A stretch of 64,000 nucleotides of DNA, from NCBI GenBank assembly GCA_038496445.1, contig JALMLS010000322.1, forward strand, positions 682,001-746,000. Direction: 5' to 3'. Position numbers and translations under genes: made by a program. Positions 19,488-25,751 of the stretch are shown here, piece by piece. The notes below the pieces were generated by a model. That model was not told where the DNA came from. It searched no databases and was given only the letters and a program-made list of their open reading frames with translations. The stretch's first letter is position 1, and each line of letters opens with the position of its first letter. The DNA comes from Trichosphaerium sp. ATCC 40318. Taxonomy: Eukaryota > Protista > Tubulinea.

Positions 19488-22400
19488 TTACATTGCCGTA
19501 AGGCCTTCTTGTACACCTTGCAAGTATTTCTCCAAAAACTAAAAGAAGAAAAGTTAATACCAAGTCACCTGAAGGAAGAAAAAAGAAATAAAAAACGACA
19601 AAAAAAATTGAAATGAATTTGAAAAACTTTTTTGGCGATTGGCTTGTTTGTCGTACCTTTGAAGTAACACGTGTGTAGTTAGTTACATTCTCCTTCCATT
19701 TGATAAATGCTTGGTAATCAGCCTTGAATAAAATATTAGTAGCTACTCGAGTAGAGGCCTACGCGCGTAGCCAAAAAAAGCAAAAAAAAAAAAAGGGTGA
19801 CTTACAATCTTGCCGAGTTCTCTCTCGTATAGCTCTGAGAGCATGTTTGTGTGCTTTTCTAGATCCTCTTGTAGGTACTCAAATAGATTCTTTTCATCAG
19901 TTTTAGAATCATCTTGTGCAATATAAAACCCGTAGACATAAGACCATTGCAAAGCACGGCGATTCTACACAGTAAAAAATCAGTCTCTAAGAACTTAAAA
20001 TAGTCGAGTGTATAATTTTAAACACAGCAAACAGTCAATTATACATTGGAGGGTTTTATAGCCATAAATACAAACAAAAAAATAAAATACCAGCGAAAAA
20101 AGATGAAAAGAAAAAAAAACAAAGACGCCTCCCAGAGTGTTTCATTGGGACGAGCTTTAATTTGGCTCCACGTCAACTTGTTAGAAGAGCCATCTACGTA
20201 AAAACCAAAAATTCTTTGAACTACTACGCGTTTAAAAACATACCTTTAACAATTGCTCAGCAGCTTCATGAAGAAACTTAGTATCTTGTGCTCTAACAGA
20301 AAATTTATCCAAAATCTCGCTCGCTCGCGTCTCAGCATTCTTTCTTTGCTCATCAGCGACTTTCTAAACGAACACAGTGAGCATACAGACAACTTTCGGT
20401 AACTTTAAACGATTTTTGATAACAAAACACAAAAAAAAATTCAAGCTATCTACGCGCTTGAAAAATGCTCTAAAACACATCTCCTTATACGCACCATAGC
20501 GTTTCTGTGGGATTCATAACGATGAAAGTAGAACATGTACTTATCTAGCTCAGTTTTAATTTTTTGAGCTCCAACATCCTCGTCTTTAGCTTTAGATGCA
20601 TCGTATTTATTACAAGCATAGTATCCACCAGTTTCAGCACCATGTTCAGTCCAAGGACCACGGCACAACCAACAAAATTCGTAACTGAAGAAAAAAAAAA
20701 TTAGCAAGCGATGATACAAGAAGGCTCGAAAACAACACTGGGACCATCAGTAGGCTGAGCCAAAGAAAAAATACCAGTGCGCGTAGATACATACCTACAA
20801 CCGCCAGCCTCTTTCCTGCAAGTCATGTGCATACAACCACCATTCTTCTCAATAGGAGAGCTACACTTTGGGCATTTTTTTGTATTAGCAATAAGCCATT
20901 TAACATTCTCACTCTCATCTAAAGCCTAAAAACACAAAAATCAGAAAAAAAATCCATCTCAACGTTTGAATTTAGGGTTTTTTTACCTTTTCTTGCCACT
21001 TTTCAACGTCCAAGCAAGTAGCCGGTGTGTGATCACCAACATCACTATCAGCGCATTGAAAGCAGAACCTAAAAAAAATTGTTTAGCATGGACCAAATGA
21101 GATAAAAACGGAATTCATCGAAATGAACTTAGAAAAAAAAAGTTTTGACTTTTTTACACCACAGACACAATAAAATACAGTCTAAAATACGCCTTAAATA
21201 CCATCAATAGTATTGTATTAATATACAACCACTAAGACAATAAAAAGAGACAATGGTTTAGAGAAAAGAATATGAAAAGCATCTTCTTTTCTGAGAACGT
21301 ACTTGAAACCGCAAGAGCATGAAACAGGTTCTCTTCTATTTTTTCTTTCTACTTTAATAGAACAATTACATCTAGGAGCAGGACAGTACTTAACCTACAG
21401 CAGAAGAGTCAAAAAAAAAAATCGAAAAAAAAAACCACAATCAAACTGCAATTCCATACCAGTGGGTTATCTTCCACAATAGAACAATATAGCTTCTTAC
21501 GATATCTTTTGTACATTTCTTTACTAACTAGTTTCTTAAACGCGCGATCGTGAGTCAATTCGTTGCACTAGAAGAGAAAAAAACGTCAATAGACGACTTC
21601 CAATGTAAAAAAAAGAGTGAAAAACTTTTTCCAACGTAAACGCTTTTAATCGTTTAGGTGCTAATAACTTACCTTAGGCGCAGGACATTTTGTGAACGTC
21701 ACATCTGTAGTGCCTGTGATGCGAAGCTATAAAAATGAAGTGAGATTTCAGTAAAGTACACGCGAAATATCAAAAAGGAGGAAGAATAACACGAACGTTT
21801 AAAATAAAACAAATCAAAAAAAAAAAGGAGACGCGAGTGCTGAAATAAAAACGATGATTGTTACCTCTAAATACTCTCGCCAGCAGTTCTTACAGTTACG
21901 ATGGCCACACGATAGTGCAAATGTATCCTTACCCAACACATCGTCTAAGCAAATCGGACAGCACATCTATAAACAGTTTAGAAGCGTCTCATGACGATAA
22001 AAAAAAAAAAAAAAAAAAATCAAGACCGTTGTTGGCGTTTTCACTGTACAGTACCTTCTTTTTTTTATTTTTGCATTTACGCTCTTCCTCGAAAGTGGGC
22101 GAAACACCAGCAGCTTTGCAAACTTTTTCAGGGTTTTCCATGTACGCTTGTACGAGTTTTTCCTTATTCCACCTATAGTAAAATAAATCAGCACTGTGAA
22201 GGATGAAAGGCAAGTGTCAATGCGGCCAAAAGTATAATTCACAGATCAGCAACAAATCAGTTTTAAAAACGCGCTTTGGGTGCGAGATATCGTTCCGACG
22301 CGTTTGAGTGCGAAAAAAGTTGTAAAAGGCATTAAAACCTAAAACAGATCTGTGTGAAGTTGAAAAACGTACTTGAAATGGCGGATAAGTATGAGCGCTG

Positions 22401-22650
22401 CGCTTTTCGATGGTATATTAAGGAAATCCATCACTTCGTTTATAATATTTTGGCTCCGCTCTTCTAATACACTTTCCTCTAAAACCTCGAAGGATTCTGT
22501 CTTCTCCATGGGTTCATTTTGGTTGTAACCGTCCTGTAGGTCCATACTATCGTATAATTCGTACTCCATCTCGTCATACTCATCATATTCATCTCCTGAA
22601 CCCAGATCGAAGTCGTTTTCGTCATACTCGTCGTAGTCACCCTCAGACAT
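19488..22650 (-). CDS. ARI1: Ariadne-family RBR E3 ubiquitin ligase (multi-exon)
   Basis: Acidic N-terminus, HFKWNKEKL, RING1, IBR, RING2 [22 protein letters not shown]...FCWLC, Ariadne domain [11 protein letters not shown] and [10 protein letters not shown]...FEYLQEDLE. Confidence 0.93.
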
Positions 22651-22932
22651 AATCTTTTTTCTTTGTTAACAGAATTGGTATTCCTGACTCCCTTAATCCT
22701 TACGGGAGCGCGACGTACTTATGGTTTCGTGTTGGATGAACGGTTTGTTTTTGCAGCAGCGGCTTTATTCAACGCTTTTGCTGAACTTTAAAGAAAATGA
22801 TTGACTCGCCTAGAAAAGTCACGCTTCAGTGCAACTACGCTGGCTAGATTCGGCTACAAGAGTTTTATTTTGTGCTCGAAAGAGCTGACGAAGTAGTTTA
22901 CAATTAAAAAGTTTTGTGTTTTGGCGTCTGTG

Positions 22933-25113
22933 CTACTCGTTGTTGAATTGATCCTAGAGAATGGTGTGAGCAATGAGGGAGTGCGCAGGTATTTTCAAAG
23001 AAGGGGAAGCAAAACTGGCCTACCTGCAATTTTTTCGCCATTGCTGTGTCCTCATCTTCCTGAGTATACGTGCGCACTGCAAACTGGTAGAATTTGGTTA
23101 AAAGCGTGAAAGCATCTCCAGAATTGAGTTTTATGGTTTGTCCGCAATTCAAGGGTTTTATATTGTTGTCGTTTGATATACAGAACAATGGGTTCACTCC
23201 TTGGTTGCGCAGTTCCAATACAAAGTTATCCGCGCTGCCAACTGGTCTAACCTTCGCCTGAGTGCGACTCACGCGTGTATCACCGCCTACATGCGCTCTG
23301 CCAAGCGTGATGCGTTTATTGAATGGCACGTAGATATCCTCACCTATGCGTTGTTAATCCTAGTCATCGTTATGCTTCCCGCACCTCCATCAAACTTTGC
23401 AAACAACCGAACGCCACATATTTCCTTTGAAGACGAACTTGAGCCAGCAGATGTCTTTTTTTGTTTTTTTGGTGTTTTGGCTTTTACCGCTGCTTGTGGC
23501 TTTGGAGTACTCTTTTTCACTGCTGGTTTCGGTTTTGCTTTGTAAGGTTTTGCGCTTGGATTACCTTTGACAGCTCCTTCAAATTGTGCAAAGTCAATCG
23601 TAGAAATACCCAGCTCCTCAAGCATTCCATTGATTTTATCGAAAGGTTTATCATTTTGGAACGCGTGGACATTCGAGGGTGAAGGCATTGATACAAGCTT
23701 CATCGGTACACCTTTACCATAGTTCTAATAATAGTCAGAGACCGAAAGAAGGTGAGGACGCCAATGTTTCATAAAAAAAGAGAGGACTCTGCCGTAGGTT
23801 GTGTGGTTACCTTGTACATATTTAGTACTGTCTTCCTTCCACTTCCTAGCTCGCCACAGAAAGCTATGACCAAACCTCCCTTCGGATTTGCTTTTTTTTC
23901 TTTAAAGATGAGTTTTACAATATTAGAGAAAATTGGCGCCCATGAATCTATATGGGATTGCCTGGCTGCATCGTTTGCTACATAAAGAGTCACATATATA
24001 CTATAGCTGGTAGAGTACCTGTTGTTGTGAGGGATAAAGGAAGGAACATAACGCCTTTTCTCTGACATTTAAGAAACCACGATTCAATAGACCCTTCAGT
24101 TATAGAAAGGGCTCTTTTAATAGCTTCCATCTCTGCTGTAATATTATCAGATTCAAATGTAGTACATGCGCCATCCCAGAAAGGATATCCTGTGCCGTCA
24201 CCGTTCCATCTGGCTTTTTTGTTAGTAATATCTCCTTTTGTCTTGTATAGTCCTGTACGTACTGAATGGAAGGTTCTTCAGCGATAAAAAGCACTTTTAC
24301 TCTTTGTGGGTAGCCTTAAAAGAACATTAGTTGACATGTTTTTTTTTGAATTTTTGCAGTTACCAAATTTGTCGAATACTGTCGTAACACGCGATGACGG
24401 AGGTCCAAAAGGTTTTTTAAGGGAATCTAGAACATCATCACCTCCTGTTAACGCTTGCTCCCAGCTTTATTAAGCATCAGAAAGTGATAAAAAAAATAAA
24501 CAACATTTGCTGAGATAGTTTCTTTTAATGGTCATTGTACTTACCCTCCAGGCACAGAAAAGTCTTCACTTGCTTTCTTCTGTTTAGCTGGCTTTGCTTT
24601 CTTTGATTTCTTGCTCTTTGACGCTTTTTCTATTTTTTGGCGTCTTATCTTCATGTACTCTTTGATGAGGGTGCGTAAATGTTTTTTATCGACTTCTTTT
24701 AACGTTTCAAAGTCTACGAAAGAGGTTGACAAGGCAGAAAGAGAAGATCGAGCCCTATTTGTTATTTAACGAATTGATTTTGGATGGGTACCTTGTAGAT
24801 CGTCCTCGCTTTCGATTACTTTCGTTGTGAGGCGTACTCGTTTGAATGCGTGAAACATACACTCTGGGTGATACCTGACGGTGTTAAAGCATCTGTGTAT
24901 ACCTTTTGGCATACCATTTGGTCTGTAGGTCCCCTTCGTGAAAAAAACTCGCTGTTTGTTTTCCAATTCGCACTGTTGCTTTCTCAATCTCCTTAGACTC
25001 ACATCCAGAGAATCCACACTAAGTTAAATAACATTAGCGGTTAAAAAACTTGTTTTACATACTTTGGAGCGTCCAGTCGGTGCGTATGTTACAATGTAAA
25101 GGTTGTTGGCCAT
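22933..25113 (-). CDS. PARP-type zinc finger + degenerate family-1 uracil-DNA glycosylase domain + FHA + MIU protein
   Basis: YIVTYAPTGRSKCGFSGC...IEKATVRIG...KWYHPEC (zf-PARP); GPPSSRV...RVKVLFIAEEPS, GVMFLPLSLT, SH..SW..IF, SMPSPS...FDKINGMLEELGISTIDF (UNG fold); ITLGR...VSRTQ...GVNP (FHA); EDEDTAMAKKLQDQF (MIU). Confidence 0.75.
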
Positions 25114-25751
25114 CTTATTTAATGTTTTTCCATGAATAATTGTAATTTTGTAAGCCTACCTTAACAATGTTGTTGGTAACCAAATTGGTTTATTTTGTGT
25201 CTAGACTTTCAACATGAGCGTTGTTTCTCAAATGACATATGCCACAAGGAAATTAAGGATCGATAGTTGTCCTCTTTTGCTATGACAATGTGCCTTGTAC
25301 TCCTTCATTTACCTCACCACAATACCAGATTTATTTTGCATTGAGAAATCACGTGGCTAAAGAAGCTCTCATTTGTTCCAACACAAGCGAAAACAAAAAA
25401 ACCCATAAGAGTTATCAGCTTCGAGGCTTAGTGCGCGTGTAGTAACATTATAACGATTGCTCTGTAACAGACATTGCGTGTCAAAACTCGAAATAAAAAC
25501 TTGTCTTTCATTGAACAATCCGAGTTCATTCGGGTCTAAGTATCCTCGATCTATTAAAGAATAATAACAACATTACTATGTTTTGTCTATTTTACAAAAA
25601 ATTTATTTACATTCTGGAGGGCTTTGATTTAAATCGGCATGTTAGTTTTTTTTGATTTGATTATTTTTTTTTGGGTGCCTTGCATTTTCCTTTGTTTTTT
25701 TTGATAAATAATGCCTCTTTCCCTTCTTTTCTTACGTTTGTATTTCTAAAA

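Follow-up and report, generated by a model that had tools for sequence, protein, structure and literature searches.

A gene on the reverse strand of a 64,000-nucleotide stretch of the genome of the amoeba Trichosphaerium sp. (here called the window) encodes a protein of 532 residues, in which a predicted PARP/DNA-ligase-III-type zinc finger, a remote relative of the family-1 uracil-DNA glycosylases (UNG) and a predicted FHA domain of the aprataxin/APLF type follow one another. The reading that we favour, and to which we give about an even chance, is that of a nuclear gene for an adaptor of single-strand-break and base-excision repair, whose UNG module would no longer remove uracil.

Gene structure and expression

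The gene lies at window positions 22933-25113 on the minus strand and comprises 11 exons with 1599 nt of coding sequence (532 codons), from an ATG at 25113 to a TAG at 22933-22935, the same limits as those given in a preliminary description of this DNA. Its parts are as follows.

25113-25063, minus strand: exon 1
25018-24915, minus strand: exon 2
24874-24792, minus strand: exon 3
24713-24545, minus strand: exon 4
24464-24364, minus strand: exon 5
24314-24263, minus strand: exon 6
24209-24019, minus strand: exon 7
23977-23811, minus strand: exon 8
23724-23385, minus strand: exon 9
23343-23024, minus strand: exon 10
22953-22933, minus strand: exon 11
22933-25113, minus strand: whole coding region, with consistent exon phases and introns confirmed by spliced contigs

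All ten introns are of the GT..AG type and 40-86 nt long, the exon phases agree, and the joint left by every one of them is present in spliced contigs from the public runs X1, X2, X3 and X5. Exons 1-9 are covered by record 9 of X3, exons 8-10 by record 4 of X2 and exons 9-11 by record 2 of X1; these contigs overlap across exons 1-11 and link all of the domains, and the gene is therefore expressed as one mRNA, not two. The single spliced transcript of the preliminary description is thus upheld, while the two separate transcripts that it had considered are contradicted by the overlapping RNA contigs, and a two-gene or artefactual reading is likewise ruled out, since contigs bridge the domains. 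The motifs quoted in that description could all be read in the exon translations, including VKVLFIAEEPSI, GVMFLP, MPSPSN, the terminal F.K.N..L...G...IDF, the C-x4-C ... W-Y-H-P-E-C of the zinc finger and the LGR...VSR.Q...G.NP of the FHA domain. Other strains or relatives show eight coding differences, all of them synonymous (8/8), and the gene is both expressed and kept under purifying selection.

Domains flanking the UNG-like region

The translation can be divided into six segments, listed here with the evidence for each.

24652-25113, minus strand: PARP/DNA-ligase-III-type zinc finger (predicted), about 100 residues, exons 1-4; exon 3 match to 1UW0 and ligand spacing
24547-24651, minus strand: first Lys-rich linker, second half of exon 4; translation
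23581-24464, minus strand: degenerate family-1 UNG-like domain, exons 5-9, residues ~137-354; exon-wise profile alignments
23425-23580, minus strand: second linker, rich in Lys, Pro and Ala, then a run of Ser, central part of exon 9; translation
23066-23424, minus strand: aprataxin/PNKP/APLF-type FHA domain (predicted), end of exon 9 through exon 10; APLF matches
22936-23062, minus strand: acidic stretch, then an MIU-like A-x-x-L-Q core and a 6-residue tail; translation, motif-level match only

The N-terminal finger has the putative zinc ligands C18, C23, H54 and C57 in the spacing C-x4-C-x30-H-x2-C, and the best solved match of exon 3 is the zinc finger of DNA ligase III (1UW0, E 0.016), in line with the zf-PARP domain that had been proposed. 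Compared with the C-x2-C-x28/30-H-x2-C spacing of Pfam zf-PARP (PF00645), the second half is canonical and the first pair is two residues longer. The PF00645 model, run exon by exon and against six-frame translations of the amoeba's own genome, did not report the locus, where the domain is divided among four short exons; solved-structure matches of exon 2 were chance ones, none of them relevant. Judged from its best match, the domain appears to belong to the PARP/ligase III class of fingers. It has in common with the fingers of DNA ligase III alpha (1UW0) and PARP1 (F1/F2) a W-Y-H-x-x-C-M-F core followed by an R..TTK.IE helix, and like them it sits at the extreme N-terminus of its protein, but it differs in its first cysteine pair (C-x4-C versus C-x2-C) and is followed by neither a ligase nor a PARP catalytic domain. 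The plant protein ZDP, in which PARP-type fingers are joined to a DNA 3'-phosphatase, illustrates that such fingers are able to deliver a repair module to breaks, although ZDP lacks both the UNG and the FHA domain. The first Lys-rich linker resembles a nuclear localisation signal or a tail that binds DNA unspecifically, and together the finger and the Lys-rich linkers would bring the protein to nicks and gaps.

At the other end of the protein, the two best solved matches of the FHA domain are both the FHA domain of APLF (E 0.04 and 0.07), and the alignments extend over the whole of the domain, which is interrupted by a 41-nt intron at 23344-23384. In the APLF alignment R435, S445, R446 and N470 (the G-R, S-R and N-P of exon 10) correspond to Arg27, Ser39, Arg40 and Asn60 of APLF, residues with described roles in phosphothreonine binding (PMC4655838). 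The earlier assignment to the aprataxin/PNKP/APLF subclass is borne out by these matches and by the retention of all four binding residues, and the domain is, as far as its sequence tells, an FHA of aprataxin/APLF type with an intact predicted phosphothreonine-binding network. It gave no Pfam match (PF17913/PF00498) at E values up to 10, and a six-frame search of the amoeba's own genome with FHA_2 returned other loci only; in an Atlas feature search the ten best named clusters were all FHA, with a score of 0.85 that we take as a lead only, and an AlphaFold single-sequence model of exon 10 alone (pLDDT 47) was too poor for fold comparison.

The tail motif EDEDTAMAKKLQ, completed by DQF, is likewise present and is divided by the last intron (22954-23023), the joint of which (22952>23023) occurs in run X1. 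A minor form of the transcript appears to keep this intron. Within it E-D-E-D-T-A-M-A-K-K-L-Q fits the MIU pattern, with A522, L525 and Q526 as its core, in a stretch too short for statistics; canonical MIUs are described as having such a Leu-Gln pair for their highly conserved core (PMC5824887). This acidic A..LQ tail may contribute ubiquitin binding.

A possible docking partner is encoded in the same genome, which contains an XRCC1 N-terminal domain (47.7 bits); BRCT-like exons lie at the same locus, as does an acidic linker in which the motif SEGTD[VE] occurs twice. In the adaptor that we propose, the FHA domain would dock on CK2-phosphorylated acidic motifs of this XRCC1 homologue.

Similarity of the middle domain to family-1 UNG

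The colinearity with family-1 UNG noted in the preliminary description was examined with a profile built from 65 bacterial UNGs, against which single exons were searched (hmmsearch) with shuffles as controls. Exons 6, 7 and 9 aligned at nodes 58-69, 95-130 and 190-224, respectively; by hhalign exons 5, 6, 7 and 9 were placed at 44-54, 59-70, 96-131 and 192-225, in the same order. Four of the five exons of the domain (5, 6, 7 and 9) are thus colinear with UNG, as had been claimed, and the length of about 196 residues compares with 181 profile nodes. Exon 9 reached 13.2 bits, a score equalled by 0/1000 shuffles (best shuffle 4.0), and by hhalign it matched the family-1-specific C-terminal motif with a probability of 87% (E 3.9e-6). 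The expected profile positions were reached by 1/1000 shuffles of exon 6 and 5/1000 of exon 7, and the four exons were colinear in 7/1000 shuffles, P values that overstate significance because the UNG hypothesis was picked by eye from the same sequence. Exon 8, which with its 55 or so residues makes up about a quarter of the domain and lies in the core of the supposed fold, has no UNG similarity above shuffles (P ~0.11); a resemblance of this exon to Walker A P-loops is due to chance, the G-x4-G-K-[ST] spacing being unmet.

Relationship to another UDG family was checked with a control profile of 32 family-4 sequences, to which nothing was colinear: exon 6 meets motif A with a score of 0.9 bits and the other exons are negative and out of order. 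A first impression that motif A was that of a family-4/5 UDG was rejected on this test. The Pfam UDG model, used exon-wise and on six-frame translations of the own genome, did not report the locus, the threshold not being reached, and a sequence search of solved structures found no match for exons 5, 7 and 9. In a BLASTP comparison of exons 7-9 with the amoeba's own UNG there was one weak match, to the C-terminal piece (E 0.017).

From these alignments the middle domain appears to be a remote relative, and descendant, of family-1 UNG. It shares with the family-1 enzymes of human (UNG) and E. coli (Ung), and with the three UNGs of the amoeba itself, the order and spacing of the motifs, and in particular the strand before motif A, the G-V-x-x-L strand, the P-S-P loop and the C-terminal F..K.N..L...G...ID[FW]; it differs from them in an insertion of about 15 residues, in its unrecognisable central quarter and in its position between two other domains. 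It would be quite improbable, in our estimation, that the middle region has a fold other than that of a UDG, and that the zinc finger and FHA domain are joined by a lineage-specific region whose UNG matches are convergent or fortuitous. Such an origin would agree with the lack of Pfam and solved-structure sequence matches for exons 5, 7 and 8, with an exon 8 that scores like its own shuffles and with the large-library search by exon 7, which gave spurious repeat proteins only. It is opposed by the ordered matches of four separate exons and the similar length, by the standing of exon 9 far above all shuffles, and by the absence of colinear matches in the family-4 control.

The genome also encodes three intact UNG paralogues, and uracil removal is therefore already covered. 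The intron positions of the present gene were compared with those of the three paralogues and none is in common. The gene probably originated in this lineage from one of several UNG copies.

Changes at the catalytic positions

In family-1 UNG, the aspartate of motif A activates water, the tyrosine excludes thymine, an asparagine reads uracil, a histidine is catalytic and a leucine wedges the DNA. The profile alignments set the Gly-Gln-Asp-Pro-Tyr-His of UNG against A181-E182-E183-P184-S185-I186, such that Asp is replaced by Glu, Tyr by Ser and His by Ile while the motif proline is kept. Further on, G-V-L-L-L-N aligns to G-V-M-F-L-P, which puts P243 in the place of UNG Asn204, and H-P-S-P-L-S aligns to M-P-S-P-(gap)-S, with M319 at the position of His268 and the Leu272 position deleted. 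The statement that the Asp, Tyr, Asn, His and Leu positions have all changed therefore holds in both the hmmsearch and the hhalign alignments.

The change of Asp to Glu retains a carboxylate, which might still allow catalysis, and one alternative to the adaptor is that the UNG-derived domain is still a glycosylase with a pocket remodelled for another base, delivered to repair sites by the finger and the FHA domain; candidate substrates would be 5-substituted pyrimidines, whether thymine-like or not, or a lesion beside a nick. The kept motif proline is consistent with this, as is the serine in place of the tyrosine that excludes 5-substituted bases; Kavli et al. reportedly found in 1996 that Tyr147 mutants of human UNG gain thymine excision. 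The purifying selection on the gene also agrees with an enzyme, and by analogy aprataxin and PNKP bear enzymes on the same kind of FHA domain. The single loss of His, Asn or Leu, however, lowers the rate of UNG by orders of magnitude each, and here the leaving-base histidine, the base-reading asparagine and the intercalating leucine are lost together, in a domain whose exon 8 has diverged past recognition. We regard a remodelled glycosylase as rather unlikely on this balance. Its specific form, an active glycosylase with Glu as general base and a gate opened by Ser that would cut a 5-substituted or damaged pyrimidine at or beside breaks, is unlikely; if it were true, this would be a break-coupled base-excision enzyme without a described counterpart.

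A different use of the fold, as a protein-binding or decoy module with no part in lesion recognition, was also considered: the module might absorb UNG inhibitors of amoeba viruses, or bind a partner in the manner of the poxvirus UDG that serves as a polymerase processivity subunit. The precedent is vaccinia D4, a UDG fold put to structural use, which unlike the amoeba module stands alone and is catalytically competent. Such a role would fit a gene that is still under selection although the catalytic and DNA-wedging residues are gone, in a lineage with several UNG genes. It fits less well with the putative nick sensor and FHA domain on either side, which suggest action on DNA, while for a decoy a search by exon 7 in viral contigs gave nothing related, and the known DNA-mimicking inhibitors bind loops that are changed here and that a decoy should presumably keep. 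We consider a protein-binding or decoy function very unlikely. In the adaptor that we prefer, the UNG-derived module would bind a damaged nucleotide, be it abasic, flipped-out or altered in another way, or a partner protein. A sensor of breaks or abasic sites, a remodelled enzyme and a decoy for inhibitors had all been put forward as hypotheses in the preliminary description.

Relatives and precedent

Each exon taken alone gave no Pfam family over threshold, and the sub-threshold matches were irrelevant. No relative was found among 1.84 billion proteins searched with the 63-residue exon 7; the five matches were giant Calx/Ig-type repeat proteins with scores summed over repeats, and are spurious. 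There was no self-match, the amoeba protein being absent from that library. Nothing was found in metagenome contigs searched with exons 7 and 10 or in a word search with exon 10, and weak RNase H-like leads (< 0.9) from an Atlas feature search with exon 7 were disregarded. The literature search found no paper on this domain combination or on UNG pseudoenzymes. The preliminary description had called the architecture undescribed, and this is consistent with the lack of both an orthologue and a paper. The combination of zinc finger, degenerate UNG and FHA domain was found nowhere else and appears to be new, as far as one large search with an exon of 63 residues can tell.

Comparison with the APLF group and implications

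The closest parallel in design is APLF, with aprataxin and PNKP, which carry an FHA domain of the same subclass and, in APLF, a similar logic: a domain docking on phosphorylated XRCC1/XRCC4, a module targeting sites of damage and a central functional domain. The amoeba protein differs from this group in that its FHA domain is C-terminal rather than N-terminal, its putative targeting module is a nick-binding finger of ligase III/PARP type rather than the poly(ADP-ribose)-binding PBZ fingers, and its cargo is a degenerate UNG domain in place of a HIT nucleotidyl hydrolase, a kinase/phosphatase or a histone-chaperone tail; the similarity of its FHA domain to that of APLF is marginal (E 0.04), under Pfam thresholds.

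To our knowledge, aprataxin, PNKP and APLF are the sole factors that ride on XRCC1/XRCC4 by this FHA subclass. The amoeba gene would encode a fourth kind of XRCC1-tethered factor beside them and, if this fourth type is real, the FHA docking system would be an open platform for lineage-specific cargo. The middle domain would be a natural UDG fold kept under selection after losing its catalytic and base-reading residues, in a protein that is small, soluble-looking and easily assayed, and may therefore bear on how glycosylase folds are reused as binders of lesions and abasic sites or retargeted to new bases.

Gene structure and transcription

The region, eukaryotic DNA of about 37% G+C, contains a gene interrupted by short introns, as seen from the six-frame ORF list and the minus-strand sequence. 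Exons were set by GT..AG boundaries, with phases checked by script and each exon translated separately, and the resulting model of 11 exons encodes 532 codons (1599 nt), its limits being identical to those of the preliminary description.

25113, minus strand: ATG start codon
22933-22935, minus strand: TAG stop codon
Introns, minus strand: 44, 40, 78, 80, 49, 53, 41, 86, 41 and 70 nt

Logan contigs from four public sequencing runs (X1, X2, X3 and X5) were aligned to window positions 22300-25500. Each of the 10 predicted introns coincides with a contig joint whose plus-strand ends read CT..AC, and the absence of the introns from the contigs marks the latter as RNA-derived. An X3 contig of 1174 nt runs from about 25116, 3 nt upstream of the ATG, through exons 1-9, an X2 contig of 790 nt covers exons 8-10 and an X1 contig of 535 nt exons 9-11; these overlaps place the zinc finger, middle domain, FHA domain and tail on one mRNA, as had been proposed. 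Of the differences shown by X1 and X5, which represent other strains or close relatives of the amoeba, 8/8 of those within codons are synonymous, an argument that purifying selection acts on exons 9 and 10. The amoeba's own 70-Mb genome has one copy of the gene.

A neighbouring gene lies downstream on the same strand.

22339-22789, minus strand: downstream gene, transcript start near 22789, ATG at 22650
22654-22718, minus strand: 65-nt intron in its 5' leader, joint seen in X2 and X3

Its leader starts about 145 nt past the stop codon of the studied gene, its N-terminus is very acidic, and its start may resemble that of an Ariadne-type RBR ligase. Its own 5' intron and a contig depth about 20-fold above that of the studied gene identify it as a separate transcript.

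The zinc finger

The exon translations contain the zinc ligands C18-x4-C23-x30-H54-x2-C57, with W-Y-H-P-E-C-M-F in the second half. Among all solved structures, the top match of exon 3 (27 residues) is the DNA ligase III zinc finger 1UW0 (E 0.016), in an alignment that takes in both the His and the Cys ligand as well as the R..TTK.IE helix after them, which agrees with the proposed PARP/ligase III type; exon 2 alone gave no relevant match in the solved-structure search. The Pfam zf-PARP model, applied exon-wise, did not report the locus, as expected for a finger split over four short exons. The C-x4-C spacing of the first ligand pair is unusual, and is real, since the exon 1/2 joint creating it is confirmed by RNA.

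Kinship of the middle domain

Pfam, exon-wise and six-frame, did not recognise the middle domain (exons 5-9, about residues 137-354); exons 7, 8 and 9 found nothing relevant among solved-structure sequences, and no relative emerged when metagenome and viral contigs were scanned with single exons. One big search for an orthologue, with exon 7 (63 residues) against 1.84 billion representative proteins, a library without the amoeba's own protein, returned five matches, all giant repeat proteins summing weak repeats, and therefore no orthologue. A word search with exon 10, blind to proteins more than 1.75 times as long as the exon used, likewise yielded no relatives.

For a family-level comparison, the amoeba's own canonical UNG was located first; one of its exons retrieved 74 bacterial UNG loci, and 65 full bacterial ORFs gave a family-1 UNG profile of 226 nodes, against which the exons were searched singly with all filters off.

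Matches of the middle-domain exons to the family-1 UNG profile
Exon 5: no profile match; hhalign columns 44-54, E 0.38; P...vF.af, weak; shuffles not scored
Exon 6: nodes 58-69; hhalign columns 59-70, E 0.0016; vkvvilGqDP vs VKVLFIAEEP; 1/1000 shuffles equal in score and place
Exon 7: nodes 95-130; hhalign columns 96-131, E 0.024; akqGvlllnavLt vs QRKGVMFLPLSLT at its end; 5/1000 shuffles equal in score and place
Exon 8: nodes 152-156, trivial; best hhalign match at columns 94-115 (E 0.16), which is out of order; score equalled by 114/1000 shuffles
Exon 9: nodes 190-224, 13.2 bits; hPsPls...f..k.f.k.n..L...g..idw; hhalign columns 192-225, probability 87%, E 3.9e-6

The 13.2 bits of exon 9 were reached by none of 1000 shuffles (the top shuffle of exon 9 scored 4.0, and the top one of all exons 8.7), and at least four exons were colinear with the profile in 7/1000, statistics to be read with the caveat that the UNG hypothesis had been picked by eye from the same sequence. 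The claimed colinearity therefore stands for exons 5, 6, 7 and 9, which follow in order, and falls for exon 8, which is unrecognisable: matched to its expected profile segment only, it was bettered or equalled by 11% of shuffles. The domain is about 196 residues long against 181 profile nodes, with the surplus in exon 8. A G-E-L-G-S-G-R-K-T stretch in this exon (23811-23975, minus strand) was considered as a Walker A motif; its ABC-transporter matches (E 0.3-1.2) were taken as chance, the G-x4-G-K-[ST] spacing being unmet.

Against a profile built from 32 family-4 UDGs as a control, exon 6 gave a generic motif-A touch and nothing was colinear, which places the kinship with family 1. On these alignments, descent of the middle domain from family-1 UNG is very probable, with high divergence and a quarter of the domain beyond recognition; that the region has some fold other than that of UDGs, as the blank exon 8 and the Pfam and solved-structure searches might suggest, is improbable.

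Catalytic positions

In human UNG, Asp145 activates water, Tyr147 is the gate against 5-substituents, Asn204 reads uracil, His268 stabilises the leaving group and Leu272 intercalates. Profile alignments bear out the claim that every key motif has changed, the positions of all five residues being altered: G-Q-D-P-Y-H is replaced by A-E-E-P-S-I, the Asn of G-V-L-L-L-N by Pro, and H-P-S-P-L-S by M-P-S-P-(gap)-S. Family-1 membership is thus supported by homology and fails at catalysis. Uracil excision is very unlikely given the loss of all five residues; pseudo-glycosylase of UNG origin is the most fitting name for the domain, which can at the least be termed non-uracil. The Asp-to-Glu change is conservative and the Tyr gate opened, which still leave room for another activity; a retargeted glycosylase that remains active is a minority possibility.

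The genome also encodes three canonical family-1 UNG paralogues, each with several introns and with GQDPY[HF], L[NI]xVLT and HPSP[LM] all intact.

Contig C16, 19316-19615: canonical UNG gene
Contig C4, 308704-309109: canonical UNG gene
Contig C33, 369175-369650: canonical UNG gene

Ordinary uracil repair is thereby covered and the raw material for a duplicate is present. No intron position is common to these paralogues and the studied gene, so gene structure adds no support for UNG descent. Elsewhere (contig C11, 483200-483325), an exon with V-I-I-G-D-N-P-G and a weak Pfam UDG match (21.1 bits) looks like a MUG/TDG (family-2) glycosylase.

The FHA domain and tail

Exon 10 (106 residues) had no Pfam match. 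A search of 177,635 solved sequences put the APLF FHA domain in the first two places (E 0.04 and 0.07), aligned over the whole domain, in keeping with the aprataxin/APLF type first assigned. Its G-R, S-R and N-P align with Arg27, Ser39, Arg40 and Asn60 of APLF, which form the phosphothreonine-binding network of aprataxin-family FHA domains (PMC4655838); APLF Lys36 and Pro29 are not conserved in exon 10. A language-model feature search placed FHA clusters in 10/10 top named places (score 0.85), a lead rather than proof; a single-sequence AlphaFold model was unusable (pLDDT 47). Three further aprataxin-family (FHA_2-type) genes of the amoeba show the same pattern, with weak colinear BLASTP matches.

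Contig C2, 1074662-1074766: FHA_2-type gene
Contig C93, 22588-22707: FHA_2-type gene
Contig C198, 39824-39991: FHA_2-type gene

In each of them an intron immediately precedes the conserved G-x-N-P/A loop, a place where the FHA domain of the studied gene has none.

The tail, E-D-E-D-T-A-M-A-K-K-L-Q then D-Q-F-N-N-E, is a putative MIU, matching at motif level the acidic A..LQ core, in which the Leu-Gln pair is highly conserved (PMC5824887). A short X3 contig of low depth (22862-23003) reads through the 3' portion of the last intron (22954-23023) without a splice joint and could represent pre-mRNA or an isoform that retains the intron; retention would exchange the last six residues for a 41-residue tail and keep the A..LQ core.

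A possible XRCC1-linked adaptor

The amoeba genome encodes an XRCC1 N-terminal domain (47.7 bits), and the XRCC1-like locus (contig C21, 275500-283500) has BRCT-like exons, Lys-rich stretches and an acidic linker. Two S-E-G-T-D-[VE] motifs in this linker resemble the S-T-D-E CK2 sites of animal XRCC1 and look like candidate CK2/FHA docking sites. XRCC4 was not found in the genome, an uninformative absence.

On one mRNA, then, a finger of the nick-sensor type is followed by a UNG descendant devoid of the catalytic set of UNG and by an FHA domain of the aprataxin family whose phospho-binding site is intact, an architecture of zinc finger, UNG-like domain and FHA on which our literature search found no paper. 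The protein has a functional likeness to the aprataxin/PNKP/APLF group, from which it differs in domain order, its ligase III-type finger and its cargo. That the middle domain is a decoy or purely protein-binding module is unlikely; an adaptor with a non-cutting UNG module has about an even chance of being correct. In such an adaptor, the finger and Lys-rich linkers would target the protein to breaks, the FHA domain would tether it to phosphorylated XRCC1, and the UNG-derived module, instead of cutting uracil, would bind either a partner protein or a nucleotide that is abasic or flipped.
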